Of a stretch of 64,000 bases of DNA, positions 6,901 through 51,878 are shown piece after piece. A program made the position numbers and the translations under genes. The notes beneath the pieces are model-generated. The model was not told the DNA's origin, made no database searches, and saw only the letters and a list, made by a program, of their open reading frames with translations. Source of the stretch: Macrostomum hystrix (lineage: Eukaryota > Animalia > Platyhelminthes); contig CATNEN010000009.1 in assembly GCA_950097015.1 (NCBI GenBank), positions 1,550,001-1,614,000 on the forward strand. The letters are read 5' to 3'. Numbering within the stretch: the first letter of the stretch is position 1; each line of letters starts with the position of its first letter.

Positions 6901-9900
6901 GGTCGTTGACGGATTATCGGACGGATGCGGCCTCACCTTGTCCTGCTGGAACAGCGCAGCTCGGCACTCGCGCCCGACCCGGCCGCCGTTGGAATCGGCT
7001 GAGGCAGCCTTCCGCAGGCAGGCGACGCGATCTTCGGAGCCACCAGGCGGACAGAGGCTGCGTAGCTCTGTGTCGCAGCTGACGGCCAGGCTGGGGTCCA
7101 GACCGGGCAGACGGCGCAGCTGCAGCAGCTCCAGCGACACCTGCCGCTGACATGCTGGGGACAGGCGCTGCTGACGACCCTTGAGAACATCGTCGCGAGC
7201 GGCGGTGGCCAGGCAGCGGACCACGGTGACCTTGTCAGCTGACAACACGGAACCCCCGGCGGCGGCAGCCGCTCCGTCGGCTTTGGCGCTAGTGCAGAGC
7301 CGGCCGATGTCGGACTCGCAGGCGGCGGCGAAGTCGCGGCTGATGTGGTAGTCCCGCATGGACACCAGCTGGTGGTGCTCCACCCCAGCCCGGCAGCGAC
7401 GGTCCATCTGGGAGTGGCCCTTGCGGGCGATCAGGCAGCTCATCACCGTCTCTGTGGGCAGCGGAACAGGATTATATTTAGAACAGGATTAGAATTAAAA
7501 CAGGACCAGAAATAGAACAAGATCTGAGTTAGAACAGGATCAGAATAAGAACAGGATCAGAATTAGAACAGGATCAGAATTAGAACAGGATCAGAATTAG
7601 AACAGGATCAGAATTAGAACAGGATCAGAATTAGAACAGGATCAGAATTAGAACAGGATCGGAATTACAACAGGATCAGAATTAGAACAGGATCAGAATT
7701 AGAACAGGATCGGAATTAGAACAGGATCAGAATTAGAACAGGATCAGAATTAGAACAGGATCAGAATTAGAACAGGATCAGAATGAGAACAGAATTAGAA
7801 CAGGATCAGAATTAGAACAGGATAAGAATTAGAACAGGATCAGAATTAGAACAGGATGAGCAGCAGAGATAAAAGTACACTCACTGTCCAATCCGAGTTG
7901 GCCCTCAGCCCGATTGCAATACTTCCTGACGAAGTCCTGGCAGCTCTGCACGAAGATGACATCGGGGCTGACATCGAGGTTTTCATCGATGCGCACGGAC
8001 AGCTGCCTCACAATAGCGCCGCACGTCTTGTCCAGCAGATTGATGTTGTCCTGAAGGCAGGCGAACTCTTCCCCGGACCCGCGGCTCTTCAGACAGAGCC
8101 GGGAGAGGTCGCGCAGGCAGGGCGTGAAGAGGCGGGGATCCAGGCGCGAACGGGTGGCGCGATCGTGCAGACTCTTCGTGAGCTGGGCCGCGCAACCCTT
8201 GTCAATTCTGGCGGGGGAAACTGGTTGTGTCTTTTAGGGTGCCCAGCGACGGATGTACTTTCGCAAGGGGGGCACTTGTACTTTTAGGGCGCCCAGCGAC
8301 GAATGTACTTTTGCAGGCAGAAACAAGTTGAAATTTTAGGGGTGCCCAGCGACGGGTGTACTTTTGCAAGGGGGAAAAACTTGTACTTTTAGGGCGTCCA
8401 GCGACGGATGTACTTTTGCAGGCAGAAACAAGTTGAACTTTTGGGTGCCCAGCGACGGATGTACTTCCGCAGGGAGAAATCGGTTGTACTTTTGGGGTGC
8501 CTAGTGACTGCTGCGATTCCAGCCATGACTCCTGCTGCGATTCTAGCCATGACTTCTGCTGCAGTTTTAGGCATGACTCCTGCTGCGATTTCAGCCATGA
8601 CTCCTGCTGCGATTCTAGCCATGACTCCTGCTGCAGTTTTAGGCATGACTCCTGCTGCGATTCCAGCTGTGAGTCCTGCTGCGATTTCAGCCATGACTCC
8701 TGCTGCGATTCTAGCCATGACTCCTGCTGCGATTCTAGCCATGACTCCTGCTGCAGTTTTAGGCATGACTCCTGCTGCGATTCTAGCCATGACTCCTGCT
8801 GCGATTCTAGCCATGACTCCTGCTGCAGTTTTAGGCATGACTCCTGCTGCGATTCCAGCTGTGAGTCCTGCTGCGATTTCAGCCATGACTCCTGCTGCAG
8901 TTTTAGGCATGACTCCTGCTGCGATTCCAGCTGTGAGTCCTGCTGCGATTCCAGCCATGACTCCTGCTGCGATTCCAGCTGTGAGTCCTGCTGCGATTCT
9001 AGCCATGACTCCTGCTGCTAGCCGATAAAACAGCAGCCCTGAGCAGAAGTCTACCCAACCTACCCAAAGCCAGATGCAGTAGCAAAGAAAAAAAAATCAA
9101 TGAGGTTGAACTGTACGAGCAGTCACCAAAACTGCATAAATTGGATTGCGCTAACAATAGCAGGCAGAAATAGCAGAAATGCCACCCCAACTCACTTATT
9201 ATTATTTTGATTCATCAAACGAAAGAGGCAGTTGAAAACCACGGCGCTAGCGCGATACTGTCCGTTGCCATTGGCAACCAGGCTGTTGCCGTTGCCGCCG
9301 GAGTCTCTCCACCAGCCGTCCCGCACGCCGCAGCTGTCCCTGGCCTCGGCCTGACAGGCTCGGTACAGGTCCACATTCAGGCGGAAGTCGCGATTCTCAA
9401 AGTAGACCAGCTCAGCGATGCGGTCGGCGCACTCGGTGTTGATGCTGTCTCGCCGCACCGCCAGGATGGACTTCAGGCAGGCGTAGACGCTGACGACACC
9501 AGGAGCCGAGCAGTGGGTTCGAATCTCGCCCGAGCAGGCGCCCATGACAACGGGATCGGCGCGCAGGTCCTTCATGGGCATGGCGACGCGGAGCACTCGG
9601 TCAACGGCTCGTTCGCACGGATGGGTGGCGTTGTCGGAGGTGGCGGTGTCTGGAATGGCGTCCCTAGCAGCGCGCAGTTGTCGCATGATGCAGTGCAGAA
9701 GGCCCGTCTCGGATGTGCGATCGGCCCGGCAGGACTGCAGCTGGGCGGCGCAGCTCGCGGCCAGCTCCGGCAACAAGCGGGGATCGGACAGGAAGTCGGA
9801 GCGGACCTGGGGGACTCGGCAATCGGCCCAGATTCAAGGGTGATAAATGATACGCCACAGCCAGACACTAATGTGTTTAGAGTGCCATTCTCCCAGTTTG

Positions 9901-29100: not shown

Positions 29101-29746
29101 CTCTCTATATATACACAAAGAAATTGGGGTGGGTGCATGTTTCTACTTTAAGAGTAATATAACGCACAAAGAGCTCGGCGTTATATAACGATATTTAGCT
29201 AGAGCATGAGGAGAAATGGCGGGAATTTAAAATTATAAAGAAAACCTAATTTATACACTGCCTCACATAGAATGATTTTTATACAATTAGCTTTAGCTTT
29301 GATCAATGGATCCACCTTGGAGTCCTTGAAATTTCTTATTTAAAGCTACAATTAGTCTTGGTTTTTTAACACTTTCATTAGCTATCCTTTAGATTTTTTG
29401 TGTGCAAGAAGTTCTTATTGCTATTGTGACTAATGTTTCACTGTGAGATGTAAGTTTTATTCATTGGCCAGTTAGATATCTGATTATCTTTGTGTATCTA
29501 TTGAGTAAAATTGAAGTTCACAGTTTTTGGGATGATTTAAGTTATACTAACTCTGGTTCATTTATATTACACTTTTAGTAATTTTAAACTTTTTAGTAGA
29601 CTTGTTAAACAAAGAACTAAAGCTTCCAAGTTAATCAACTAACAGCAGCTGTCTCCAAAATCAAAAGCCAGTCATTATTAGCATGAACTTCATAATTTTA
29701 TGCTCTATTTAATATATTGGTTTCCATTACAGCTGCTCCCTGAAGC

Positions 29747-32700
29747 ATGAAATCTGCAATAATTAACAATGAATGTGGGCCAGCGAAGCTGCAATCTGCA
29801 GTTCGCCTGCTTCAAGATGGCCTTGCCGATGTGCTGCAAAAATCCTATAGTTTGAACAAGCCGCTGGACCTGAAGGAAGGCCTTCAGATGGTGCGAGATC
29901 ATGCTGGTGAATTCGCGCCCGACTTGACTGTCCAGAAGGAGCTTCTTGGAGCTCTGGACAGAGCAGACGATGTTGTAAGCAGAATTTGTCAGCAAGAGTT
30001 CGACGCCTGCCGTTGCGAGCACGACATGGAGTGTCTGCTGAAGCTGGCATCCTTGATGGGACTCCATGAGTTCAGAGCGATAGCCAGTGAGCACACTGGA
30101 ACTGCAGCTGCCAGCGAAGGGTGGGAGAAGCTGAAGGCCGAGGGAAACGAGCATTACAAAAGTGGAAGGTGGGCGGAGGCCATGGACTGCTACACGAAGG
30201 CGATCCGAGTCAATGCGAAAGTGCCAGTTCTGTACTCCAACCGAGCCCTGTGTGAGATGCAACTGGCCAAGTTCGATTTGGCTCGCGAGGATGCCGAAGA
30301 CGCCATCGATCTGGACCCGAAGCAGGTGAAATTCTACCGCATCTTGTCTGATGCGCTCTTCAGGCTCGAGCTGTTCCAGGAAGCTCTGAGTGCTTGCGAA
30401 GACGGTCTGAATCTCGATCCGAGAGACGAAATTCTGGTGTCAAGGGCACGTGGCTGCAAGGCTGCTATCGTCCACAAAGAAATCAAGATGCACCCCAAGG
30501 CTGGTGGCTTTGAATCTGTAAGAGATTCACGAGTTAGAAATAACATATTAGATACAATGCTTAAGAAAGCGTCAGAATCAGAAATTTCGGCTGATGAAAT
30601 CGGCTTGGTTGATGCCACCACGATGCAAACGATAAAGAAAATCAGAGAAGCCCACCTCATTTTGCAGTCATGCAGAGGCAACGCTCGCGAGGAGCAGAAG
30701 GCATTCAAGATCTTCGAGGCCGCTGCGAAACGAGGCAGCGCAGAGGGGCTTTACAATATGGCTCTGATGTACTATGATGGACAGGCTGGACTGACGCGCG
30801 ATCCAAAGAAATGTTACGATTTGTGTCGCAAAGCTGCTGAGCAGAAGCCTTATTTGAAATTCAAAGCTGCCGGTTTGATTCATGCAAACATTGGTGTCGC
30901 CGAAGCCGAGAACTCCATTGCCATGGCCTTTAGAGATGGGCTGATAGTTAAGCAGGATGAAAAACTGGCCTTTCAGTGGTTTCTAAAGTCCGCAAAGCAT
31001 GGCTGTCCGTCCGCAATGAACAATTTAGGCCGAGCCTATTACAATGGCTACGGCTGTGAGAAAAGCCTGGAGTCTGCTCGCTTCTGGTACCAGAAATCTG
31101 CGGACCTCGGACAGTCGGAAGCGCAGTTTAACCTGGCTTTTTTGCTTGAAAATTGTGAAGGAGGACCTGCAGACATACCGAAGGCAGCTGAGCTACTCAA
31201 GTCTGCCGCTGATCAGGGTCTCCCAGGTGCGCTTATTGCACTGCAGCAGCTAATGCGTTCAGGTGCTAACGGATCAAAGTCTATGGAAGCTCCTAAAAAG
31301 ATCGTGCAACGAAGGGCTGACTCAAATGAGAAGGAGGCACTGTATCTCATCGGAATGAACTACTTACTGGGTGAAGGTGGCTTCGCAAAAGACATGTCAG
31401 AGGCTGAAAAGTACTTGAGAAAGGCCTCTAAGCTCAATCACAATGGAGCCACAGTCGCACTTGGTGAAATTCTCCTGAAACAAAACAGAAACGAAGATGC
31501 CATTCCTTTCATTTGGAAAGCTGCAGAGGACGGAGATAAAGACGCTCAGCGGACCCTCGGCAAATTGCTGGCACTTGGTCATGGCTGTGGCCGTGATGAG
31601 ACTCAAGCTCGGCGATGGCTGCTCCGTTCTAAGATGAGCAAGGATGATGTCGATGAATTTATCAAGTACTCTGCAGCAGTTAATGATTTCGAAGCTGCTG
31701 AAGGTCTCGAGCAGTGTGGAATTCAAATGTTTGAGCGAATCGAACGATTTGCTACGTCTTTTGTCCCTGCCCAGGAGGATAAAAAAGACATAAACGCCAT
31801 TTTTAAGCTCTTGGGCCCAAAAAACTCTCGCCATCCCGCGTGTGCGCCAATGTCTTATTCTACTTTGGAGCATAAAATGCAACTGATGGCACAGAAGGCT
31901 CTCGAAGGATCGAAAACTGCCCAAAGCCTTTTCATTGCTATTGATCTCATAAAGCAGGCGTCTTCAGCGTTGGATAGCCAGAACCCATCCGAAGCGTTTC
32001 GCCTGTTCAGAGAAGCTAATCGAGCTTGGCAACCTCTTCCTATGGATCTAGAGACCTGGGATCGTCTATTCGCTGCCGCAAAAGAGGCTATAGAGAGAAA
32101 TCCAAAGCATGCTGATGCGCTGTTTGTTATGGTGCATTGCAACACTGTCAAGAAGCTCTGCAGCCTTCCCGAGCTTCAGCGCATGGCATTAAAGTGCACC
32201 ATTTTGAATCCTGACGTTGCCGACTACCACACCCTTCTGGGCTGCATGTATGCGTTTAATTGTGATTATGAGTCAGCTTTAAAGTCAATCGAGCGAGGAC
32301 TAGCGCTTGAGTGGGAGCCTGAGTGGCTCTATGATAAGGCGTCTGCCATGAGGCTTCGAGATGTAAGAGAGCACCAAAAAGTGATCGATATCTACGAGGA
32401 ATACCTTTCCTCGTGTGAGCCAGACAGCCGTCATGTTCCGAAAGCCTTGTACTCAATCGCCGATGAGTACTTCGCTATGAATGACATTGAAAACGCGCGC
32501 AAGTTCTTTAACAAAGGCCTTCGAGCCGAGAGTCCGGATCTGAGGCTCCCATTTTTCGAACCAGTAGATGATTTTCCTCCGAAAATGCTGCTCAAAATTC
32601 AACTCGATGCCGAAGCACGTAAGAGCTCAGTGCTCAAAGCGCGCACGAGCTCTGCGACTTCCGCTGCTTTCCAGTCCGGTCAAGGCCAGTGTGCGAACTG

Positions 32701-32812
32701 TAACAAGGCCGGAGCTTCAAGCAGGTGCAGCAAGTGCAAGAAAGCCTTCTATTGTAATCGTGATTGCCAGCTGAATCACTGGAAAGTGCACAAGAAGCAA
32801 TGCGCTGTCTAG
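29747..32812 (+). CDS. Paralog 1: degenerate HEPN-like N-terminus + TPR + SEL1-repeat array + TPR + zf-MYND, 1021 aa, intronless CDS
   Basis: TPR (KLKAEGNEHYKSGRWAEAMDCYTKAI..LYSNRALCEMQL.KF..A.EDA..AI.LDP) and multiple SEL1 repeats (SAMNNLGRAYYNGYGCEKSLESARFWYQKSADLG). C-terminal MYND CANC..RCSKCKKAFYCNRDCQLNHWKVHKKQC. AG acceptor at 29731-32 just before the ATG. Confidence 0.92.
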   Translation: MKSAIINNECGPAKLQSAVRLLQDGLADVLQKSYSLNKPLDLKEGLQMVRDHAGEFAPDLTVQKELLGALDRADDVVSRICQQEFDACRCEHDMECLLKLASLMGLHEFRAIASEHTGTAAASEGWEKLKAEGNEHYKSGRWAEAMDCYTKAIRVNAKVPVLYSNRALCEMQLAKFDLAREDAEDAIDLDPKQVKFYRILSDALFRLELFQEALSACEDGLNLDPRDEILVSRARGCKAAIVHKEIKMHPKAGGFESVRDSRVRNNILDTMLKKASESEISADEIGLVDATTMQTIKKIREAHLILQSCRGNAREEQKAFKIFEAAAKRGSAEGLYNMALMYYDGQAGLTRDPKKCYDLCRKAAEQKPYLKFKAAGLIHANIGVAEAENSIAMAFRDGLIVKQDEKLAFQWFLKSAKHGCPSAMNNLGRAYYNGYGCEKSLESARFWYQKSADLGQSEAQFNLAFLLENCEGGPADIPKAAELLKSAADQGLPGALIALQQLMRSGANGSKSMEAPKKIVQRRADSNEKEALYLIGMNYLLGEGGFAKDMSEAEKYLRKASKLNHNGATVALGEILLKQNRNEDAIPFIWKAAEDGDKDAQRTLGKLLALGHGCGRDETQARRWLLRSKMSKDDVDEFIKYSAAVNDFEAAEGLEQCGIQMFERIERFATSFVPAQEDKKDINAIFKLLGPKNSRHPACAPMSYSTLEHKMQLMAQKALEGSKTAQSLFIAIDLIKQASSALDSQNPSEAFRLFREANRAWQPLPMDLETWDRLFAAAKEAIERNPKHADALFVMVHCNTVKKLCSLPELQRMALKCTILNPDVADYHTLLGCMYAFNCDYESALKSIERGLALEWEPEWLYDKASAMRLRDVREHQKVIDIYEEYLSSCEPDSRHVPKALYSIADEYFAMNDIENARKFFNKGLRAESPDLRLPFFEPVDDFPPKMLLKIQLDAEARKSSVLKARTSSATSAAFQSGQGQCANCNKAGASSRCSKCKKAFYCNRDCQLNHWKVHKKQCAV

Positions 32813-33487
32813 TTGTGTAACTATTGACAACCAACACGAGAAGCTCTCGCCAGACCAGACAAATAAACATGTGAACTATTTTCAATTAAGCAGGTTTAGT
32901 CAAGATTTTTTCTCAATGTTAGTAACAATTGTGTTCTCAATTAGCCTGAGGGTGTAATGCATTGAGATATTGTTGTGTGAGTCCGAATCGAACTTGGATT
33001 TCCCACATGTTCTGACCTTTAATGTTCACTTTCACATGCGCCAGAATTTTTGTCAGCGAATGCTGATGATTTTGCACAGCTTCCTGACTGTTCCGGCGCT
33101 CCGAGAAGGCAATTTTGATCTACCTGAAACTCCAACAGCTCATTTTTTCTTTTCTAGGCTGATTTTAGCCTGAGTCGTACTGAAAAATGTAATCCTGCTG
33201 TCCTTTGTTATTATTTTTTCATTTAGAAACTCCTGAATCTCAAGCTGTTTACTAATAAACAGCATCATTGTATTCAAGGTGTCACCTGCTGCAATAATAT
33301 GTTACATTGTCGGCCAGTTTGGCTAAGTTATTTCGTTTTTTGTTCAAATAATGTTTCCTTTTCATGTTTACTTTCCATGTGGCAACAGTCCAAGTCATAA
33401 TTTTTTAGTTCTTCAGACCCCGTTTTTCAGAATTTAACTTAGCAACCTTTACTAACATTGGATGTCTGATCTAGTGGAATCGAGTGG

Positions 33488-36400
33488 TCTAATCTTGTTA
33501 TCCAGTGATCTAGTATTGTTATCGAGTGATCTAGTATTGTTATCGAGTGATCTAGTATTGTTATCGAGTGATCTAGTATTGTTATCCAGTGATCTAGTAT
33601 TGTTATCCAGTGATCTAGTATTGTTATCGACTGATCTAGTATTGTTATCGAGTGATCTAGTATTGTTATCCAGTGATCTAGTATTGTTATCGACTGATCT
33701 AGTATTGTTATCCAGTGATCTAGTATTGTTATCTAGTGATCTAGTATTGTTATCGACTGATCTAGTATTGTTATCGAGTGATCTAGTATTGTTATCCAGT
33801 GATCTAGTATTGTTATCCAGTGATCTAGTATTGTTATCGACTGATCTAGTATTATTATCGACTGATCTAGTATTGTTATCGAGTGATCTAGTATTGTTAT
33901 CCAGTGATCTAGTATTGTTATCCAGTGATCTAGTATTGTTATCCAGTGATCTAGTATTGTTATCCAGTGATCTAGTATTGTTATCCAGTGATCTAGTATT
34001 GTTATCGAGTGATCTAGTATTGTTATCGAGTGATCTAGTATTGTTATCCAGTGATCTAGTATTGTTATCTAGTGATCTAGTATTGTTATCCAGTGATCTA
34101 GTATTGTTATCCAGTGATCTAGTATTGTTATCCAGTGATCTAGTATTGTTATCTAGTGATCTAGTATTGTTATCCAGTGATCTGGTATTGTTATCCAGTG
34201 ATCTAGTATTGTTATCCAGTGATCTAGTATTGTTATCTAGTGATCTGGTATTGTTATCCAGTGATCTAGTATTGTTATCGACTGATCTAGTATTGTTATC
34301 GAGTGATCTAGTATTGTTATCCAGTGATCTAGTATTGTTATCGAGTGATCTAGTATTGTTATCCAGTGATCTAGTATTGTTATCCAGTGATCTAGTATTG
34401 TTTTCGACTGATCTAGTATTGTTATCCAGTGATCTAGTATTGTTATCGACTGATCTAGTATTGTTATCGAGTGATCTAGTATTGTTATCCAGTGATCTAG
34501 TATTGTTATCCAGTGATCTAGTATTGTTATCGAGTGATCTAGTATTGTTATCGAGTGATCTAGTATTGTTATCCAGTGATCTAGTATTGTTATCGAGTGA
34601 TCTAGTATTGTTATCGAGTGATCTAGTATTGTTATCGAGTGATCTAGTATTGTTATCCAGTGATCTAGTATTGTTATCCAGTGATCTAGTATTGTTATCC
34701 AGTGATCTAGTATTGTTATCCAGTGATCTAGTATTGTTATCGAGTGATCTAGTATTATTATCGAGTGATCTAGTATTGTTATCGAGTGATCTAGTATTGT
34801 TATCGAGTGATCTAGTATTGTTATCCAGTGATCTAGTATTGTTATCCAGTGATCTAGTATTGTTATCCAGTGATCTAGTATTGTTATCGAGTGATCTAGT
34901 ATTGTTATCGAGTGATCTAGTATTGTTATCGAGTGATCTAGTATTGTTATCGAGTGATCTAGTATTGTTATCGAGTGATCTAGTATTGTTATCGAGTGAT
35001 CTAGTATTGTTATCGAGTGATCTAGTATTGTTATCGAGTGATCTAGTATTGTTATCGAGTGATCTAGTATTGTTATCCAGTGATCTAGTATTGTTATCGA
35101 CTGATCTAGTATTGTTATCCAGTGATCTAGTATTGTTATCTAGTGATCTAGTATTGTTATCGACTGATCTAGTATTGTTATCGAGTGATCTAGTATTGTT
35201 ATCCAGTGATCTAGTATTGTTATCCAGTGATCTAGTATTGTTATCGACTGATCTAGTATTATTATCGACTGATCTAGTATTGTTATCGAGTGATCTAGTA
35301 TTGTTATCCAGTGATCTAGTATTGTTATCCAGTGATCTAGTATTGTTATCCAGTGATCTAGTATTGTTATCCAGTGATCTAGTATTGTTATCCAGTGATC
35401 TAGTATTGTTATCGAGTGATCTAGTATTGTTATCGAGTGATCTAGTATTGTTATCCAGTGATCTAGTATTGTTATCTAGTGATCTAGTATTGTTATCCAG
35501 TGATCTAGTATTGTTATCCAGTGATCTAGTATTGTTATCCAGTGATCTAGTATTGTTATCTAGTGATCTAGTATTGTTATCCAGTGATCTGGTATTGTTA
35601 TCCAGTGATCTAGTATTGTTATCCAGTGATCTAGTATTGTTATCTAGTGATCTGGTATTGTTATCCAGTGATCTAGTATTGTTATCGACTGATCTAGTAT
35701 TGTTATCGAGTGATCTAGTATTGTTATCCAGTGATCTAGTATTGTTATCGAGTGATCTAGTATTGTTATCCAGTGATCTAGTATTGTTATCCAGTGATCT
35801 AGTATTGTTTTCGACTGATCTAGTATTGTTATCCAGTGATCTAGTATTGTTATCGACTGATCTAGTATTGTTATCGAGTGATCTAGTATTGTTATCCAGT
35901 GATCTAGTATTGTTATCCAGTGATCTAGTATTGTTATCGAGTGATCTAGTATTGTTATCGAGTGATCTAGTATTGTTATCCAGTGATCTAGTATTGTTAT
36001 CGAGTGATCTAGTATTGTTATCGAGTGATCTAGTATTGTTATCGAGTGATCTAGTATTGTTATCCAGTGATCTAGTATTGTTATCCAGTGATCTAGTATT
36101 GTTATCCAGTGATCTAGTATTGTTATCCAGTGATCTAGTATTGTTATCGAGTGATCTAGTATTATTATCGAGTGATCTAGTATTGTTATCGAGTGATCTA
36201 GTATTGTTATCGAGTGATCTAGTATTGTTATCCAGTGATCTAGTATTGTTATCCAGTGATCTAGTATTGTTATCCAGTGATCTAGTATTGTTATCGAGTG
36301 ATCTAGTATTGTTATCGAGTGATCTAGTATTGTTATCGAGTGATCTAGTATTGTTATCGATTGATCTAGTATTGTTATCGAGTGATCTAGTATTGTTATC

Positions 36401-37362
36401 GAGTGATCTAGTATTGTTATCGTGTGATCTAGTATTGTTATCGAGTGATCTAGTATTGTTATCCAGTGATCTAGTATTGTTATCGAGTGATCTAGTATTG
36501 TTATCCAGTGATCTAGTATTGTTATCGAGTGATCTAGTATTGTTATCCAGTGATCTAGTATTGTTATCGAGTGATCTAGTATTGTTATCGAGTGATCTAG
36601 TATTGTTATCGAGTGATCTAGTATTGTTATCCAATGATCTAGTATTGTTATCTAGTGATCTGGTATTGTTATCCAGTGATCTAGTATTGTTATCCAGTGA
36701 TCTAGTATTGTTATCGAGTGATCTAGTATTGTTATCGACTGATCTAGTATTGTTATCGACTGATCTAGTATTGTTATCGAGTGATCTAGTATTGTTATCG
36801 ACTGATCTAGTATTGTTATCGAGTGATCTAGTATTGTTATCGACTGATCTAGTATTGTTATCGAGTGATCTAGTATTGTTATCCAGTGATCTAGTCTTGT
36901 TATCCAGTGATCTAGTATTGTTATCCAGTGATCTAGTATTGTTATCGAGTGATCTAGTATTGTTATCCAGTGATCTAGTATTGTTATCCAGTGATCTAGT
37001 ATTGTTATCGAGTGATCTAGTATTGTTGTCGAGTGATCTAGTATTGTTATCTAGTGATCTAGTATTGTTATCCAGTGATCTAGTATTGTTATCGAGTGAT
37101 CTAGTATTGTTATCCAGTGATCTAGTATTGTTATCGAGTGATCTAGTATTGTTATCCAGTGATCTAGTATTGTTATCGAGTGATCTAGTATTGTTATCGA
37201 GTGATCTAGTATTGTTATCCAGTGATCTAGTATTGTTATCCAGTGATCAAGTATTGTTATCGAGTGATCTAGTATTGTTATCCAGTGATCTAGTATTGTT
37301 ATCCAGTGATCTAGTATTGTTATCGAGTGATCTAGTATTGTTATCGAGTGATCTAGTATTGG
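33488..37362. repeat. 21-bp satellite array (gtgatctagtattgttatc(g/c)a), ~3.9 kb
   Basis: About 184 tandem units; source of the artefactual 1315-aa and 1060-aa ORFs. Confidence 0.98.
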
Positions 37363-40860: not shown

Positions 40861-41665
40861 CGTCTCTGGCGGTAGCATCAGGATGTTGTCAGGGTTTTCA
40901 TTGCCCTTTGTGAATGGACCATATAAGATTATAAGCTAATCTATACTGTGTCTAAACACTATGCACAATTAAATTAAGTTATTCTGATATAGTATCTTGC
41001 TTTTTAAATTGGAGTAAAATGCTAGGGTTAAGGAACACTGCAGCTTCTCATATGCAACTCCATCCTATAACAGCAACCCAATAAATATATTCAAGAGTAT
41101 CGATTCCTGCTGCCATAAGCAAACTTTGGACATTTTAGAGGCTATGTACATGTATAAAGATCAGAATGCTATCCTCAACTGCCAGCTAGCTATGGGGGTG
41201 CTAGCCATCTACTCTGTTTTAGCTTGGAGTGTGTTCTGCTGCACCGTTTGCTCTCTCTCTCTCTCCTCTCTCTCCCTGGCCTTCTATTCATATTAGACTT
41301 GACTAAACCTGATTTGACCATAGATCGAATATAAGCTAGATCTATGGATTTGACTGAAAATTACAATATGTACTAAGGTACATCCATTGATTTCAGAAAT
41401 ATATTTATGAAACTACTGTGTTCACTTTTATTCACTGACCTAATAATGACCAATAAGGTCGAAATGGATTGGCTGATTAAAATTAAATATATAATGTTTA
41501 TTCTATATTTCCTTTAAATTAAGTAAACTAATTTATCAACACATCAATATTTTCACAAAGTTCAGAATATTTTTTCTCATTGTTATGTTAGACTTTTGTA
41601 CTGTTTTGATCAAAAATTTTCTATAAGTTTTTATAACTTACTGTTTCACTTTCAGCTGCTCGCTT

Positions 41666-44539
41666 ATGGATTCAGCGCATCTTAAAAATGCTAAAGCTGC
41701 TGCGTACATACAATATGCAGTCAGTCTACTCCAGTGTGACATAATTGCAATCTTAAAGAAAAAAAACCTTGCAAGGACAAACAAAATGGACTTCAATAAC
41801 TGTCTTCAAGATGTGCAGAAAAATGTCAAAAAGTTCCTTTCTGACTTGGATTCCCAAAAAATGCTTCTCGGGACTTTGAACAGGGCGAGAGAAATTAGAA
41901 ACCGCTATTCACACCACGATTTTGATGCCAACCGTTTTGAGCACGACATGGAGTGTCTACTGAAGCTGGCATCCTTGATGGGACTGAACGAGTGCCGAGA
42001 GAAAATCATGGAATTTGTTGGAACTGTAGCCAATGAATGGGAGAAGCTGAAGGCCGAGGGAAACGAGCATTACAAAAGTGGAAGGTGGGCGGAGGCCATG
42101 GACTGCTACACGAAGGCGATCCGAGTCAATGCGAAAGTGCCAGTTCTGTACTCCAACCGAGCCCTGTGTGAGATGCAACTGGCCAAGTTCGATTTGGCCC
42201 GCGAGGACACCGAAGACGCCATCGAACTGGACCCGAAGCAGGTGAAATTCTACCGCATCTTGTCTGATGCGCTCTTCAGGCTCGAGCTGTTCCAGGAAGC
42301 TCTGAGTGCTTGCGAAGACGGTCTGAAGCTCGATCCGAGAGACGAGGTGCTCATTTTAAGAGTACGAGATTGTAAGGCCTACATAACTGATAAGAAAATA
42401 AAGTCGCACCCTATTGCTGGGGGTATTGAGCAAATGATGAATCCAGAACTTTGCAAAAAGCTTTGCGACCAACATATGAAAGATCTATTTGAATCTGATG
42501 CTACACCTGACGAAGTTGGCCTAGTGGACCGTGTTAATATGGAAACCGCTCTGGAAATCAATAAAGCGCACCGTATTTTTCAACCAAACAAAGATAGCCT
42601 TGAAGCTCAGCGAGAAGCGTTTAAAATATTTGAATCTGCTGCAAAGCGTGGCAGTGCAGAGGGACTGTACAATATGGCAATCATGCACAAGGACGGAATG
42701 GCTGGGCTGACCTGTGACTCGAAGAAATATCTTGAATTATGCCACAAAGCTGTCGAGCAGAAGCCCTTTTTAAAATTCCATTTTGGAGCCATTTTTCCTA
42801 ACATTGGCGTCGCAGAAGCAGAGAACTCCATTGCTATGGCGTACAGAGACGGGCTAACCGTTGATCGAGATGAAAAAGTTGCCTTCAAGTGGTTTCTTAA
42901 GTCTGCAAGGCATGGCTGCCCATCCGCAATGAACAATCTAGGCTTGGCTTTGCGGAATGGTGCGGGCTGTGAAATCAATCTAAAATCGGCTCGCTGGTGG
43001 CTCCAGAGATCCGCTGACCGTGGCCAATCTGAGGCCTTAGTTAATTTAGCTGGTATGTTAGAAAACGGTGAAGGAGGACCCATTGACGCACCGAAAGCCG
43101 TGGAGCTTCTTAAGGCTGCTGCTGATCAGGGCTTTCCCGATGCTCTTCTGGAAATGCAGCGTCTGATGCGATCTGGGGCTAGCGGAGTCGGACCGCTTAA
43201 CGAATCTAAGAATTTAGTTCAGAGAAGAGCCGATTCAGATGAAAAGGAGGCGCTATTTGTCATGGGAATAAACTATATGTTAGGAGAAGGTGGATTTGTT
43301 CAAGACTTCGCCGAGGCTGAAAAGTATCTCAGGAAGGCATCCGATATGAGTCATGAGAGAGCTGTCTTTGTCCTTGGACTCGTTCTTCTACATCAGAGAA
43401 AAGACAAGGATGCCGTGCAGTTCATACGGAGGGCTGCAGAGAGTGGTAATAAGGACGCTCAGCAGATCCTTGGCCAACTGTTGGCTTTTGGTCATGCCTG
43501 TGAACGCGATGAAATTCAAGCCCGCCGATGGCTGCTTCGTTCAAACGAAAAGCCGGATTCCGTTGATGATTTAATTAAACTAGGCGCAACCATTACCGAC
43601 TTTGAGGCTACAAACAAGCTTTCACAGTCTGGTCTCACCTGCCCTGAGCGTATAGAAAGATTCATGGTGTCTTTCGCTCCAAGCGAGATCATAAAAAAAT
43701 CTCTCGAAGAAGTCCTCAAGCTTTTTAATCCGAATCAACTGGCCCTACTCCATCCAGCGCATTCTGTATGTAATTCCAAGCTAGAAAAAACGATGCCGTT
43801 GATGGCGAATAGAGCTGCTCAGGGATCTAAAACCGCGCGAAAGTTTTTTTATGCTCTGAATCTTTTAAATAAAGCGTGCCTCGCATTGGAGAGTAAAAAA
43901 CCAGCAGATGCATTCCGGCTGTATAGACAAGCTGAAAGAACCTGGCAGCCCCTTCCAGTATCTACTTTTATCTGGAGTAAGCTTTCTGCTGCCGCTGAGG
44001 AAGCCTTTGAGAGCAATCCAAATGATGCTGATGCTCTGTTCGTCCTGCTGCACTATAAATCTGCTTCGAAACTTTACAGTACTGCAGAGCTTCTTCGCAT
44101 GGCCTTGCACTGCACGACCTTGAATCCTCGTGTTGCAGACTACCACAGCCTTTTGGGTAATTTGTATGGATTTAACGGTGATTATATCTCTTCGGGTAAG
44201 TCCATTGATCGAGCTCTTGAACTCGAACCGGAGCCTGAATGGCTGTACAATAAGGCGACTTCGTTGAGGCTTCAATGCAGCGAAGACCACCAAGCTGTTA
44301 TCAATGCATATGAACAGTACATTAAGTCGAGTGAACCAGATAGCCGCCAGGTTCCAAAGGCTTGGTACTGTATAGCTATGGAGCACATAGCCATGCATGA
44401 TAGAACAAAGGCAAGAGAGTATTTTCAGAAGGGGCTCCAAGCAGAGCATCCGGACGTGAGGCTGCCGTATTTTGAACCGGAAGATGATTTCCCTCCTAAA
44501 AAAATTCTTCGAGTATTGTTTTCATTGGGAGCTATGTAG
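41666..44539 (+). CDS. Paralog 2: HEPN-like domain with intact R-N-x3-H motif + TPR + SEL1 array + TPR, no MYND, 957 aa, intronless CDS
   Basis: Colinear with paralog 1. N-terminus ..LNRAREIRNRYSHHDFDANRFEHDMECLLKLASLMG (R78-N79-R-Y-S-H83). Ends at ..DDFPPKKILRVLFSLGAM* without a MYND finger. AG acceptor 41654-55 before the ATG. Confidence 0.92.
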   Translation: MDSAHLKNAKAAAYIQYAVSLLQCDIIAILKKKNLARTNKMDFNNCLQDVQKNVKKFLSDLDSQKMLLGTLNRAREIRNRYSHHDFDANRFEHDMECLLKLASLMGLNECREKIMEFVGTVANEWEKLKAEGNEHYKSGRWAEAMDCYTKAIRVNAKVPVLYSNRALCEMQLAKFDLAREDTEDAIELDPKQVKFYRILSDALFRLELFQEALSACEDGLKLDPRDEVLILRVRDCKAYITDKKIKSHPIAGGIEQMMNPELCKKLCDQHMKDLFESDATPDEVGLVDRVNMETALEINKAHRIFQPNKDSLEAQREAFKIFESAAKRGSAEGLYNMAIMHKDGMAGLTCDSKKYLELCHKAVEQKPFLKFHFGAIFPNIGVAEAENSIAMAYRDGLTVDRDEKVAFKWFLKSARHGCPSAMNNLGLALRNGAGCEINLKSARWWLQRSADRGQSEALVNLAGMLENGEGGPIDAPKAVELLKAAADQGFPDALLEMQRLMRSGASGVGPLNESKNLVQRRADSDEKEALFVMGINYMLGEGGFVQDFAEAEKYLRKASDMSHERAVFVLGLVLLHQRKDKDAVQFIRRAAESGNKDAQQILGQLLAFGHACERDEIQARRWLLRSNEKPDSVDDLIKLGATITDFEATNKLSQSGLTCPERIERFMVSFAPSEIIKKSLEEVLKLFNPNQLALLHPAHSVCNSKLEKTMPLMANRAAQGSKTARKFFYALNLLNKACLALESKKPADAFRLYRQAERTWQPLPVSTFIWSKLSAAAEEAFESNPNDADALFVLLHYKSASKLYSTAELLRMALHCTTLNPRVADYHSLLGNLYGFNGDYISSGKSIDRALELEPEPEWLYNKATSLRLQCSEDHQAVINAYEQYIKSSEPDSRQVPKAWYCIAMEHIAMHDRTKAREYFQKGLQAEHPDVRLPYFEPEDDFPPKKILRVLFSLGAM

Positions 44540-45220: not shown

Positions 45221-45620
45221 ATTTTGCCTCCCGTCTTTACACCAAGGGGGAATTCCAGCAGAATTTTTTGACGGCTTTGAATGCTGTCAGCGTTGGGTGG
45301 TGACTGATTGGTTGACAAACTAGACGATGCTGTCCTGACATTTAGGCTTCCTAATATTCCTAATGTCCTAATATTTAGGCGTCAGCCATGAAATTGGCGA
45401 AATTTGCATCAGGGTGTCCATAGTGGCCTATTTCCACCTGTTTTTGCCCTTGAAGGTCCAACAGTCCGTCTAGATGAAGATAGGTGACCACCGAAGTGGG
45501 AGATAATACAGGTACCTTCGGGTGACGTGCTGATAAAGTTTGGAGGCCTGGCGCTGCACTGAGGCGCAGTGCAAAATTGTGTGTAGGGAAATACACTAGC
45601 GCTTATGGGAAAAATCCTAC
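45221..45620. repeat. Dispersed ~380-400-bp element, copy B (homologous to 25801-26180)
   Basis: Same ordered conserved strings as copy A, same orientation. Confidence 0.85.
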
Positions 45621-46239
45621 CTTTTGTCAGAAGCTAGTTCTACTGTTAATAAAAAAAGAATGTTATATTTTTGTTATATTTTTATATTTTAGTTTTGTTC
45701 TTTTCATACTGTTGATTGTGTTTATTATCAGTGACAATGATTCTCAGAATGTTATGATTGTTTTTTTATATTTTAGAAAATAAGGAAATTATACAAATGC
45801 CCTACTTCACATTGCATAAACAGAAGTAGAACTTGTAGTATAAGCAAATATTATATGCGCCTATGTGATGGGAATTCAAGTAAAACTTCGAAGTTAATGG
45901 TGTTTAATTATTAATCATTTGAAGTGATCAAAGCTGTGATCATGATCGGATCATCTGAGCCTAGATATCATTTGATCACAGCACGCGATAAAAACTGATG
46001 CATAAAAGTCAGCAATCCTTAAATTAAAAAACTCGCTCGAGCTTAGTTAATACAAAAACATATGTTAGAAAGTAAAACGGCCCTTTTAGGGCCACGGTAT
46101 AAATAATGCTACGAAGTGCAAAGAAGGCGTGAGAGTTAAAACCAGACGGATGGTCTGAGTCAAAAGAGGGAGGTGCCCTCTTGTAATTTGAAACTAACAT
46201 TCTTTAGAACATCCTGGACATCGGGTGTTGAATACGTTT

Positions 46240-46900
46240 CCAGGTAAACCATTCTCGAAATTGGGGAAGACCAGTTCAGCCTATGGTCCAGGATGGTCCC
46301 TAGACATTTGGTTTGCTTACAGAAGGAAATTTCCTTTCCGTAAAGCCTAAGCGGCCGTATCTGCCACTTGTTCCTGCTGGTGAACACGATCACTGCAGTC
46401 TTTGTCTCCGAGCGCTTCAGACCACAGCGACCCGCCCATTGCTCAGCAGTGTGGATGAAATTCCGAAGCAGGTCCTTGAGAGTATCAGGGGATGGGCCAG
46501 ACGCCACAGCAGCCCTAGAGAAGCTCGGCAATGACCATAGGAGAGAAAAGAATAGGAGAGAGCACCCCTCCCTGCGGGTTTCCTTTCGGACGCGGACCGT
46601 CCGAGCAGGACCGGCCCAGCAGGCTGGCGGTGACCGTGCTATGACTGATCATATACATGATCCATCTGGTGAGGGATGAGTGTGTGCGTCTCTCACATAG
46701 GGCTTTGCGGAACGTCTCGAAGAGGCAAATGCAAAGCGTTGTCAAAGACACCGTTGATGTCCAAGATCCAGAGCGAAGCCGTTGCCAAGCACAACTTTCT
46801 CCAGTTTGTCGACAAGAACGTGCAGCGCGCTTTCGGTGGAGCGACCCGCCCGAAAAGCATGTTGTATAGCAGGTTTACTTGCCGCCTGCTACCTTCTGCC
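46240..46900 (-). mobile_element. Frameshifted non-LTR retrotransposon RT fragment (R1/I/Jockey-like)
   Basis: Broken frames give LDINGVFDN, KGNPQGGVLSPILF, GLKRSETKTAVIVFT and KCLGTILDHRLNW, which correspond to LINE RT subdomains 3, 4 and 6-7; stops and frameshifts are present. Confidence 0.85.
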
Positions 46901-48150: not shown

Positions 48151-49520
48151 CCGAGCAAAATTAAACAAATATTCTCCTTAATGCATAATTAATGAGCCTT
48201 TTACATAACGCAATATTTACATAACGCCACCCACCTCTCTGCACCTCCACCAAGCTAACTGTACAATGTCAAGCCAATCAGAACGTGGCATGGCTCGGTT
48301 GCACACTACGCAGGGTCAAGGCTGGGTCAACGAAGACTTTTCATAACGGTTTAAGCGCGTAACGACAGATCTCTCCCATATATAATATATAAATATAAAT
48401 ATATGTATAAATCACGCCTGACCCATAATAGAAAGAATGAAATCTGAAATAGACAAATGCTAAAAATAGGATGCTCGTATAAACTTGTCTCATTTTCGCA
48501 GTGAATTTACCGAAGCTAAAGCTGGAAATCTGTATCGTGAACTTATTAGCAACCGTTAAGAAGAGTGCGTCTTGTATATATGTACGGCTTCGCAATGGCA
48601 AGTGAAGTAACAAATTCTAATCTGTAAAAAATAATTAAATTAACAATACTAATAACTTTTTTAGATGCAAGAAATGCTTTTTCAATTGACACATCGATAT
48701 TAAAAGTTTTCAGGTGCATTACCGAAGCAATAAACTTCAGTTTTCGTTTTTCGTTTTTTTAATCTATATATGTCCTAGGCAACCTAAATTCTGCTTAGTG
48801 CGTGATCGAATAGCAATAATAATAACATTAGTTAATAGAACTATATTTTTTGTCTGGTTTATTAATTTTCAAACTATACTTTCTTGTATAAGTTTTATGT
48901 ACATTTAGCACACTGTATTGCTTGTTAATTCTTGCGAGCATTTAATAGCTCTTGATAGCATTTAATAATATAACTATTTCCTATAATTATTTTTCGTCAT
49001 TGGCTTTGTTCATTAACTCTATAAAATACTTTCTCATGCATGATTCTGTCAATACAAAAGTAAATAATGCTGTAATTATATTGTTTTTGCACTCCATTAT
49101 ATTATTTTATTATAATATTTATACTTGTTGTTTTATTAATAACATAACAGATAAACAATACATTATTACAATATTTATATAGCTTCATACATATCATTTT
49201 GCATCAGTTATCTATTTAGCTTTGCTTTCTAATCCTTTGTTAACAGTTCAGAACTTCAAATCAAACCAATCTGGCATATAGTACTGTACTCCTAGAGCCT
49301 CCTAGCCCTAATGGGTTTGATTAAAAATTGGGAACTCATCTGACCAGATGATGTGAACCCACTGCTTTCGGCACCAATGCCAATTAGCTCGAGGAAGCAT
49401 ACTTGTGCTCAACTTTCCTGAATGACATTGCTCGATTATCTATCGGATTTCAAATTATGTGGTAGGCTAGCAGCGATTTTTAATGCAAACAACTACATCG
49501 ATTTCAGTTCTCAAGTCGTC

Positions 49521-51878
49521 ATGGATCTTGAAAAGCTGCGATCTGCAGTCAGAGTGCTCCAAACAGTCTTTGCCACTGTACTACAGGAGTCTCATGCCTA
49601 CAAGCCCCGAGACTTCAAGGAAGGCCTTCAGATGTTGCGAGATTACGCTGTTGATGCTTCCCAGAAGGAGCTTCGAAGGGCTCTGGACAGAGCAGACGAT
49701 GTTGCAAGCAGAATTTGTCAGCAAGAGTTCGACGCCTGCCGTTGCGAGCACGACATGGAGTGTCTGCTGAAGCTGGCATCCTTGATGGGACTCCATGAGT
49801 TCAGAGCGATAGCCAGTGAGCTCACTGGAACTGCAGCTGCCAGCGAAGGATGGGAGAAGCTGAAGGCCGAGGGAAACGAGCATTACAAAAGTGGAAGGTG
49901 GGCGGAGGCCATGGACTGCTACACGAAGGCGATCCGAGTCAATGCGAAAGTGCCAGTTCTGTACTCCAACCGAGCCCTGTGTGAGATGCAACTGGCCAAG
50001 TTCGATTTGGCTCGCGAGGACGCCGAAGACGCCATCGATCTGGACCCGAAGCAGGTGAAATTCTACCGCATCTTGTCTGATGCGCTCTTCAGGCTCGAGC
50101 TGTTCCAGGAAGCTCTGAGTGCTTGCGAAGACGGTCTGAAGCTCGATCCGAGTGACGAGATTCTGGTGTCAAGTGCACGCGACTGCGAGGCTGCTAAAAC
50201 GACCAGGGCGAGTGTTGCGGATATGAGAAATCTAGACCTTTCGTCTGGCGATGTTAACGAGGAACTAATGGACGCATGGAAGGCAGCAGAGCATCTGAGA
50301 GCTGCTGCAGATCAGGGTCATCCAGGCGCCCTGATGTCACTGCAGCAGCTGCTGCGGTCTGGCGCGCATGGCGCAAACGCGATGGATGAATCGAAGAAGA
50401 TCGTGAAAGAGATGGCCGACCTGAATGAAAAAGAGGCATTGTTTCTTATCGGGATGAACTACCTGGTCGGGGAAGGCGGATTCAAGAAAGATTTCACGCA
50501 GGCTGAGAAGTACCTACGAAAGGCGGCCGATTTAGATCATATTCAAGCCGCGCATGAGCTAGCGAACATTCTTCTTCAACAGGAAAAACATGTCGAAGGT
50601 GTGCGTTATCTTCGGAAAGCTGCCCAGAGCGGCTACAGAAAATCTCAGAGGGCTCTCGGCTTTCTACTGGCTGTGGGCCATTGCTGCGAACGAGATGAAA
50701 CCCAGGCTCGCGCTTGGTTGCTCCGCTCCAGGCTGAGCAAGTCTTTTGTCGAAAATGTTATCCTGCAATCAGCCTGCTTAGTCCAGTTTGAAGCTGTCAA
50801 CGGCCTGTCGCACTCTGGACAAACGTATTCTGAACGCTTTGAACGACTCGCCGCATCAAAGTTTCCTAATGGACCCAAGAAAGAGACGCTTGAAGCAATG
50901 TTCCGACTCTTCAAGGAAACGCAGGAGAAACCACCTCACCCAGCGTGCGGTCCGGTGAGCGACATGGGGAAAAAGATGTTCCGAATGGCGCTGAGAGCTG
51001 CTCAAGGATCTAGAACGGCGCAACAGTTCTTAGTTGCCTTGGACATTCTTAAACAAGCCAGTTTGGCACTGGAGGCCACCGACGCATCGGAGGCCTTTCG
51101 TTTGTACCGACTGGCGGATAGAATACTGCAGCCTCTCCCTCTGGATTTCGCGTTCATGCGCAAACTGGCTGCTGCCGCAAAAGAAGTATTTGAGAAGAAT
51201 CCTAGAGATGCGGATGCATTGTTTGTAATAGTGCACTTTAGCATTGCTACCAAAAGCTGCAGTTTGCCTGAGATGCTTCGCATGGCTCTGAACTGCGCCA
51301 TCTTGAATCCAGATGTTGCCGAATTCCAATTCCTGCTTGGCAACTTGTACGGATTCAACAACGAATTTGCTCTCGCTTTGAAGTCCATTGAGCGAGCTCT
51401 AAAGCTAGAATTTGAGCCTCAGTGGCTTTACAGTCGAGCATCTGCCCTGCGTCACCAGAGCCTGAGTTCTGGTGGAAAAGAATCGCTAGTTGTCATCAAG
51501 GCCTTTCAAGAATACATTTCCGCAAATGAGCCAGACCACCGGCATGTACCAGAGGCTTTGTACTGCATCGCCGAGGAGTACATGGGCATGAAAGATTTTG
51601 CTAGCGCGCGCGAGTACTTTGACAAAGGTCTTCAAGCCGAGAGCCCCCACGTGAGGCTCCCATTCTACGAACCGCTGGACAATTTTCCATCGAAGGTTCT
51701 GCTTAAAATAGCGCTCGGTCGCGTTGCGGCAGCTTCCCAGTCCGGTCAAGGCCGTTGTGCGAACTGTGACAAGTCCGGAGCTTCAAGCCGGTGCAGCAAG
51801 TGCAAGAAAGCCTTCTATTGTAATCGTGATTGCCAGCTGAATCACTGGAAAGTGCACAAGAAGCAATGCGCTGTCTAG
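49521..51878 (+). CDS. Paralog 3: degenerate HEPN-like + TPR + shortened SEL1 array + TPR + zf-MYND (about 785 aa; ORF open from 49422)
   Basis: Colinear with paralog 1 except for an internal in-frame loss. ATG 49521 (MDLEKLRSAVRVLQ) aligns with the paralog N-termini and follows an AG acceptor at 49506-07. The MYND tail is near-identical to paralog 1. Confidence 0.9.
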   Translation: MDLEKLRSAVRVLQTVFATVLQESHAYKPRDFKEGLQMLRDYAVDASQKELRRALDRADDVASRICQQEFDACRCEHDMECLLKLASLMGLHEFRAIASELTGTAAASEGWEKLKAEGNEHYKSGRWAEAMDCYTKAIRVNAKVPVLYSNRALCEMQLAKFDLAREDAEDAIDLDPKQVKFYRILSDALFRLELFQEALSACEDGLKLDPSDEILVSSARDCEAAKTTRASVADMRNLDLSSGDVNEELMDAWKAAEHLRAAADQGHPGALMSLQQLLRSGAHGANAMDESKKIVKEMADLNEKEALFLIGMNYLVGEGGFKKDFTQAEKYLRKAADLDHIQAAHELANILLQQEKHVEGVRYLRKAAQSGYRKSQRALGFLLAVGHCCERDETQARAWLLRSRLSKSFVENVILQSACLVQFEAVNGLSHSGQTYSERFERLAASKFPNGPKKETLEAMFRLFKETQEKPPHPACGPVSDMGKKMFRMALRAAQGSRTAQQFLVALDILKQASLALEATDASEAFRLYRLADRILQPLPLDFAFMRKLAAAAKEVFEKNPRDADALFVIVHFSIATKSCSLPEMLRMALNCAILNPDVAEFQFLLGNLYGFNNEFALALKSIERALKLEFEPQWLYSRASALRHQSLSSGGKESLVVIKAFQEYISANEPDHRHVPEALYCIAEEYMGMKDFASAREYFDKGLQAESPHVRLPFYEPLDNFPSKVLLKIALGRVAAASQSGQGRCANCDKSGASSRCSKCKKAFYCNRDCQLNHWKVHKKQCAV

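Follow-up and report, generated by a model that had tools for sequence, protein, structure and literature searches.

A putative HEPN ribonuclease domain on a TPR-Sel1 scaffold in the flatworm Macrostomum hystrix

Paralog 2 and its N-terminal motif

The window considered here is a stretch of 64,000 nucleotides from the flatworm Macrostomum hystrix (GenBank assembly GCA_950097015.1, contig CATNEN010000009.1, positions 1,550,001 to 1,614,000 of the forward strand), in which three paralogous genes are arranged head to tail. We concentrate on the second of these genes, paralog 2, whose product begins with a probable HEPN domain bearing a putative catalytic R-phi-xxx-H motif, and continues into a long scaffold of TPR and Sel1-type repeats. 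The features of paralog 2 that matter for the argument are the following.

41666 to 44539, plus strand: paralog 2, a single-exon and complete open reading frame (ORF) of 957 residues, ordered HEPN, TPR, Sel1-type solenoid, TPR, without a zf-MYND domain (ORF list, Pfam)
41666 to 42025, plus strand: predicted HEPN domain, residues 1-120 (AlphaFold2 model, VIA-align, ESM-Atlas, sub-threshold Pfam and PADLOC matches)
41789 to 41794, plus strand: D42-F43 at the start of helix 2, the D present in 95% and the F in 100% of non-Macrostomum homologs
41897 to 41914, plus strand: putative catalytic motif R-phi-xxx-H, R78-N79-R80-Y81-S82-H83 (aga aac cgc tat tca cac)
42035 to 42406, plus strand: TPR module of three repeats and a capping helix, residues 124-247 (matches to PDB sequences, model)
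42443 to 43615, plus strand: helical solenoid with Sel1 repeats, residues ~260-650 (Pfam Sel1, E 4.9e-29, in four stretches; helix pairs in the model)
43829 to 44443, plus strand: C-terminal TPR-like region, residues ~722-926 (Pfam TPR_8, TPR_17 and TPR_CcmH at 814-925; model)

The N-terminus of paralog 2 is well defined, because an in-frame stop codon lies upstream at 41624 and the start (MDS...) is the same as that of P0037, its closest relative in Macrostomum lignano. The AlphaFold2 model of the full-length protein has a predicted local distance difference test score (pLDDT) of 87.5. An initial annotation of this DNA, made from the letters and their ORFs, had translated codons 41897-41914 as R78-N79-R80-Y81-S82-H83 and quoted the flanking peptide; on re-reading, the codons match exactly and the quoted string is correct. 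A single occurrence of R[NHD]xxxH is not significant alone, as the pattern arises in 17% of sequences obtained by shuffling the 957-residue protein, and in 4% when only residues 1-122 are shuffled. The motif owes its significance to the conservation of the Arg and His columns among homologs, not to its lone occurrence.

Homologs were gathered by an exhaustive phmmer search with residues 1-122 against 1.84 billion cluster representatives (E<=1e-3), which gave 24 matches, one of them a spurious TPR match, and by a full-length word search that added 19 further clear relatives. An earlier word search limited to residues 1-125 had found no homologs because of word-index and length limits, and a metagenome locus scan with the full paralog 2 protein gave no match. 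Identity to M. lignano proteins is 53-59% at best. In alignment A1, R78 is present in 24 of the 26 sequences and H83 in 23 of them; the full-length relatives added in alignment A2 retain both residues, and over the two alignments together ~35/39 N-terminal domains have Arg and His in these columns. The family consensus around the motif is RAxxIR[NH]xx[SA]HQxFD, so that the residue following the Arg, N79 in paralog 2, is N or H in homologs. Loss of the motif is confined to paralogs 1 and 3 of the window and to two M. lignano proteins, P0002 (RDRHSR) and P0040 (TSRLST). The motif is intact in other Macrostomum sequences, in the bdelloid rotifer Didymodactylos (P0051), in the tardigrade Paramacrobiotus (P0052), in a record from the oomycete Aphanomyces stellatus (P0004), whose contig carries otherwise ordinary neighbouring genes, and in homologs on many further eukaryotic contigs. 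The distribution of the family, which takes in flatworms, rotifers, tardigrades, an oomycete and other eukaryotes, is patchy.

A predicted HEPN domain of the Swt1-like clade

Profile searches return HEPN families almost throughout, at modest scores. In residues 1-125, the only Pfam matches with E<0.05 are HEPN_Swt1 (0.0044), HEPN_Apea (0.0089) and HEPN_Cthe2314 (0.023), all of them below their cut-offs. When each member of A1 was scanned, HEPN_Swt1 (PF18731) was the commonest Pfam match (15/26 members), and one homolog, P0020, reaches 29.2 bits (E 1.2e-6), which is above the gathering cut-off of 27.5. Two full-length homologs, P0050 and P0053, moreover carry precomputed assignments to PF18731 together with TPR and Sel1, and P0050 additionally to zf-MYND. 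Membership of paralog 2 in PF18731 appears to hold by transitive homology only. Sub-threshold PADLOC matches are mostly to the HEPN parts of CARF-HEPN, Csx1/Csm6 and Cas13a proteins, the candidate families PD-T4-5 and PDC-M34B being the exceptions. NCBIfam gave unrelated weak matches only, bar one weak match of a homolog to Csx1, a HEPN family, and all leads from a language-model atlas search lie below 0.9.

HEPN domains form a superfamily of four-helix up-down bundles, in many of which an insert separates helices 2 and 3. The AlphaFold2 model computed on A1 (pLDDT 93, predicted template modelling score 0.86) has such a four-helix bundle, with helices at residues 3-32, 43-57, 61-82 and 88-104 and an extra helix at 108-119. 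A second conserved residue of HEPN active sites is acidic and sits in helix 2, typically within Ex3[KR]; D42, at the start of helix 2 and highly conserved, is a candidate for this residue, and stands outside an Ex3[KR] context. In the model, the third helix closes with R78 to S82, and the loop after it starts at H83. The published census of HEPN domains locates the Rx4-6H motif at that same place, the end of the third helix (PMC3710099), and a polar residue (N, D or H) is expected directly after the motif Arg (10.1101/760058).

Structural comparison of the model points in the same direction. An exhaustive VIA-align search ranks the HEPN domain of a Cas effector first (9fcv, Z 8.5) and yeast Swt1's C-terminal domain second (4pqz, Z 8.2, 114/122 residues), followed by 1wwp, 2hsb, AbiF (8vz6), GlnE, Cas13b, a Cas13, a HEPN toxin and YutE, and at lower ranks by the sacsin HEPN domain, HI0074 and AbiA. 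HEPN domains account for about 11 of the 14 best matches, at Z of 6.6-8.5. In a shape search of the ESM-Atlas, the top match is a cluster whose members are 100% PF18731 (TM-score 0.73, root-mean-square deviation 2.4 over 109 residues), and the next are Abi_C and NTase_sub_bind/HepT clusters.

Residues 1-120 are thus very probably a HEPN domain, and one of the Swt1-like clade, which comprises PF18731, the 4pqz structure, the bacterial Ava_2192-type and STAND-TPR-HEPN proteins, and animal CXorf38. The likeness lies in the top Pfam family, in the 4pqz and Atlas matches, and in the placement of R-phi-xxx-H at the end of helix 3. Paralog 2 is nevertheless no Swt1 ortholog, because it has no PIN match and only a single HEPN domain: Swt1 proper combines a PIN domain with a pair of motif-less HEPN domains, whereas paralog 2 keeps its motif intact and belongs to a family in which HEPN is fused to TPR-Sel1-TPR(-MYND). 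The initial annotation had recognized a Swt1-like HEPN layout in the sequence, and profiles, predicted fold and motif conservation now support that view: Pfam finds three HEPN families in the segment and places homolog P0020 above the cut-off, HEPN domains including 4pqz head the VIA-align results, a PF18731 cluster heads those of the ESM-Atlas, and the Arg and His are conserved among homologs in both A1 and A2.

Motif loss, constraint and a predicted ribonuclease

The other two members of the array have both lost the motif.

29747 to 32812, plus strand: paralog 1, 1021 residues, with zf-MYND; HEPN motif lost, VSRICQ at 29975-29992
49422 to 51878, plus strand: paralog 3, 818 residues, with zf-MYND; Sel1 region shortened by an internal deletion; HEPN motif lost, ASRICQ at 49704-49721

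The history of these copies is complicated by gene conversion. The DNA of the TPR module is 97-100% identical across the three paralogs (42035-42370, 30119-30454 and 49848-50183), and dS is 0.05-0.12 in this module vs 2.1-2.4 elsewhere, which together argue for recent conversion. Between paralogs 1 and 3 the conversion tract is longer and reaches upstream as far as the HEPN domain's second half, dead motif included. In a full-length tree, the three window paralogs group together (100/99) as sister to M. lignano P0038+(P0037,P0039), a grouping that gene conversion may inflate. We also considered an old orthologous lineage with a live HEPN domain and no MYND finger, uniting paralog 2 with P0037; it was rejected, as the window paralogs group together and the P0037 locus retains a MYND finger.

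Relative-rate tests on the HEPN domain with four outgroups assign 19-32 unique changes to paralogs 1 and 3 vs 2-8 to paralog 2 (p 7e-8 to 3e-3), which makes the HEPN domain of paralog 2 the slowest-evolving of the three window copies. Over residues 241-950, no difference in rate is seen for paralog 1, and paralog 3 is somewhat faster against 2/4 outgroups; in the same region (708 codons), dN/dS between paralog 2 and paralogs 1 and 3 is 0.15. Judging from these rates, the HEPN domain appears constrained where it keeps the motif and released in the copies that lack it, and paralogs 1 and 3 would be catalytically dead versions of the same protein.

Our preferred reading, to which we assign a probability of roughly 65%, is that paralog 2 is a metal-independent HEPN endoribonuclease whose activity depends on dimerization and which is mounted on a repeat scaffold, its catalysis being predicted from sequence. 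In characterized HEPN RNases, two HEPN domains form a composite active site, cleavage is metal-free, and the products end in 2',3'-cyclic phosphates (10.1101/760058). Since paralog 2 has a single HEPN domain, it should work as a dimer, pairing with itself or with a paralog; paired domains would then form the composite site, cut RNA and leave 2',3'-cyclic phosphate ends. The TPR-Sel1-TPR scaffold would bind protein partners, and thereby set the place and timing at which the N-terminal domains dimerize. This gating step is modelled on RNase L and Ire1, whose dimerization-dependent HEPN RNase stands under the control of a sensor or repeat part (10.1101/760058), the repeat and kinase parts gating the HEPN (KEN) domain. 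The analogy would be functional, not ancestral: KEN is C-terminal, circularly permuted and accompanied by a kinase or pseudokinase (PMC3710099), whereas the HEPN domain of paralog 2 is N-terminal and canonical, in a protein with no kinase. The analysis establishes the fold, the place and conservation of the motif, the slow evolution of this HEPN copy and the order of the domains; catalysis, dimerization, scaffold gating and chaperone binding are all predictions in this scheme.

Several results weigh against such an activity, beginning with the fold itself. Paralog 2 scores 17.7 bits against HEPN_Swt1, short of the 27.5 gathering cut-off; no HEPN entry turned up when PDB sequences were searched with profiles of family alignment A1 and of subfamily alignment A4; Foldseek against the PDB returned nothing at E<=0.001 and generic helical bundles only; and Z-scores of 8-8.5 fall within the range in which the VIA-align tool warns of unrelated helical bundles. 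The missing Foldseek match, the Z-scores near 8 and the frequency of the pattern in whole-protein shuffles would all suit a generic helical bundle or linker that carries R-N-x3-H by chance. We regard this as very improbable, since the independent Pfam and PADLOC profiles give HEPN families almost throughout, P0020 passes a curated cut-off, the best VIA-align matches are mostly HEPN domains, the top Atlas cluster is PF18731, and the motif column is conserved. What counts in the structural comparison is the near-uniform HEPN identity of the top rows, which outweighs their modest Z-scores.

Two further points concern the integrity of the gene. Residue 84 is H in paralog 2 and Q in every other intact-motif homolog (M. 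lignano P0037, for instance, retains RNRYSHQ), and paralog 2 stops ~70 residues early, after a conserved DDFPPKK, where paralogs 1 and 3 go on to close with MYND fingers that are nearly identical. No zf-MYND remnant is found in any frame downstream of paralog 2 (44515-44539 to 45000). Most relatives have the finger, as do paralogs 1 and 3; it is ancestral, and has been lost from paralog 2. Both the missing finger and the change at an otherwise invariant position are what a decaying, truncated copy with the motif as an ancestral leftover might show. Such decay is improbable, given that the frame stays open for 957 codons within AT-rich DNA, that dN/dS is low over 708 codons and the HEPN domain is the slowest of the three copies, and that MYND-less members exist elsewhere, for example P0052 (tardigrade), P0004 (oomycete) and P0046.

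The last set of objections accepts a genuine HEPN fold and questions its activity. The HEPN region of yeast Swt1, which supplies the best named natural structural match, is regarded as inactive for want of Rx4-6H (PMC3710099). The domain of paralog 2 could likewise be an RNA-binding, nucleotide-binding or dimerization module, a role already proposed for the yeast Swt1 and sacsin HEPN domains, with R, N and H binding a ligand. To our knowledge, some HEPN domains, such as that of sacsin, are without demonstrated RNase activity. In the present family, the paralogs with a dead motif have kept long, intact ORFs that are under purifying selection, and the domain must therefore be useful without the motif. 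This non-nuclease alternative is rather unlikely, though it deserves more weight than the two preceding ones. Swt1 was judged inactive precisely because it lacks Rx4-6H, whereas here the R, the phi position (N/H) and the H are retained across phyla; moreover, loss of the motif is accompanied by several-fold faster evolution of the HEPN domain, as if the motif were its main constraint. The predicted ribonuclease thus remains the reading that we favour.

The repeat scaffold, known systems and flanking features

The fusion of the HEPN domain to TPR and SEL1 repeats, as the initial annotation had described it, is real by Pfam. In the full-length model, a disordered linker (248-259) separates the TPR module from the Sel1 solenoid, and further helices fill the interval between the end of the solenoid (~650) and residue 722. 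The top natural PDB relatives of the TPR module (residues 121-245) are Hop/STIP1, SPAG1, RPAP3, STI-1, CNS1, PP5, CHIP and SGTA, with single-domain E-values from ~1e-15 (STI-1/Hop) to ~1e-9 (SGT) and multi-TPR chains reaching 4e-27. By sequence, the module is most like the EEVD-binding TPRs of Hsp70/Hsp90 co-chaperones. Among 22 family members, K129, N164, K194 and R197 are invariant and N133 is nearly so; against what we take to be the carboxylate clamp of Hop (K, N, N, K, R), K129, N133, N164 and K194 fit and R197 comes one residue early. We treat this possible clamp as a lead only.

Co-chaperones of Hsp70 and Hsp90 (Hop/STIP1, CHIP, PP5, RPAP3, SPAG1, SGTA) are not known to have a nuclease domain, and what paralog 2 shares with them is the type of TPR. 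It is speculative that the TPR clamp would tether the protein to chaperones and that dead paralogs would regulate it. A broader picture, in which the family would act as effectors in stress or innate immunity, with a dimerization-gated HEPN RNase tethered by its TPR to Hsp70/Hsp90 or another peptide ligand and, in Macrostomum, tandem dead paralogs that regulate paralog 2 by pairing with it in inactive heterodimers, is doubtful at present.

Comparison with other HEPN proteins sets the family apart. CXorf38 has a zinc ribbon inserted in its HEPN domain, and dsRBD, NACHT or DEATH partners (PMC3710099), none of which occurs in paralog 2. DZIP3/hRUL138 and C6orf70 likewise combine HEPN with TPR and have undergone lineage-specific expansions in invertebrates (PMC3710099, Table 1), but they belong to other HEPN families: Pfam returns HEPN_Swt1 here and not HEPN_DZIP3, and the sole hint of DZIP3 is a weak language-model neighbour. 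Among Swt1-like fusions, the 2013 census of HEPN domains names those to PIN, AAA+, STAND-TPR-S1, dsRBD/NACHT/DEATH and others, and TPR-Sel1-MYND is absent from it (PMC3710099). A full-text literature search found no paper describing a HEPN-TPR-Sel1(-MYND) architecture, in line with the initial annotation, which did not recognize the HEPN-TPR/SEL1 combination from any characterized protein. Paralog 2 therefore represents a new architectural variant in a known nuclease domain family.

The interest of such a variant lies in the scarcity of its counterparts. Very few animal HEPN RNases are known to us, namely RNase L, Ire1 and Las1, alongside the inactive domains of Swt1 and sacsin, and the active ones stand at control points: the antiviral response, the unfolded-protein response and rRNA processing. 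The present family joins a predicted HEPN site, apparently live, to a scaffold that begins with a module resembling Hsp70/Hsp90 adaptors, in several invertebrate phyla and some protists, and in Macrostomum it has undergone lineage-specific expansion with repeated loss of catalytic residues. M. lignano is a tractable model amenable to RNAi and transgenesis, so that pairs of live and dead paralogs constitute a natural experiment on the role of the nuclease.

In M. lignano, the annotated P0037 protein (NIVC01000907.1) is without a MYND finger, and directly past its stop, behind a run of T, an intact finger can be read in a different frame (L003:12865-13071); either the gene itself has shifted frame, or the assembly has a homopolymer error here. 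At 7.7 kb upstream, P0037 is preceded by another gene of the family in the same orientation, a tandem layout like that of the window. P0038 (NIVC01000528.1) bears a MYND finger and begins at the TPR module; the 10 kb that precede it (L004:1-10000) yielded no HEPN-like coding sequence, and P0038 appears to be a HEPN-less member of the family. The metagenome contig that encodes P0050 (HEPN-TPR-Sel1-MYND) has as a neighbouring gene (L006:1405-3798) a PPR protein with an E motif and a DYW deaminase domain, and the contig therefore derives from a eukaryote carrying DYW-type PPR genes.

Within the window, an acceptor-like sequence, ...(t)(t)acag/ttcag CTGCTC..., is common to paralogs 1 and 2 at 10-14 nt before the ATG (29724-29746 and 41647-41665), and may be the acceptor of an intron in the 5' untranslated region or a trans-splice acceptor. 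Paralog 3, whose N-terminus is longer and different, is without it. Between paralogs 1 and 2, positions 33479-37361 are occupied by a 21-bp satellite (consensus ATCGAGTGATCTAGTATTGTT; ~185 copies, 95% match), which yields spurious ORFs of 1315 residues on the plus strand and 1060 residues on the minus strand, both without a Pfam match. Pfam likewise returned no match for the reverse transcriptase-like ORF fragments at 45378-46751. Finally, an ORF at 6664-7446 on the minus strand contains a Cys_rich_FGFR repeat (PF00839, E 2.3e-13), and probably represents an exon from a gene like that of Golgi apparatus protein 1.

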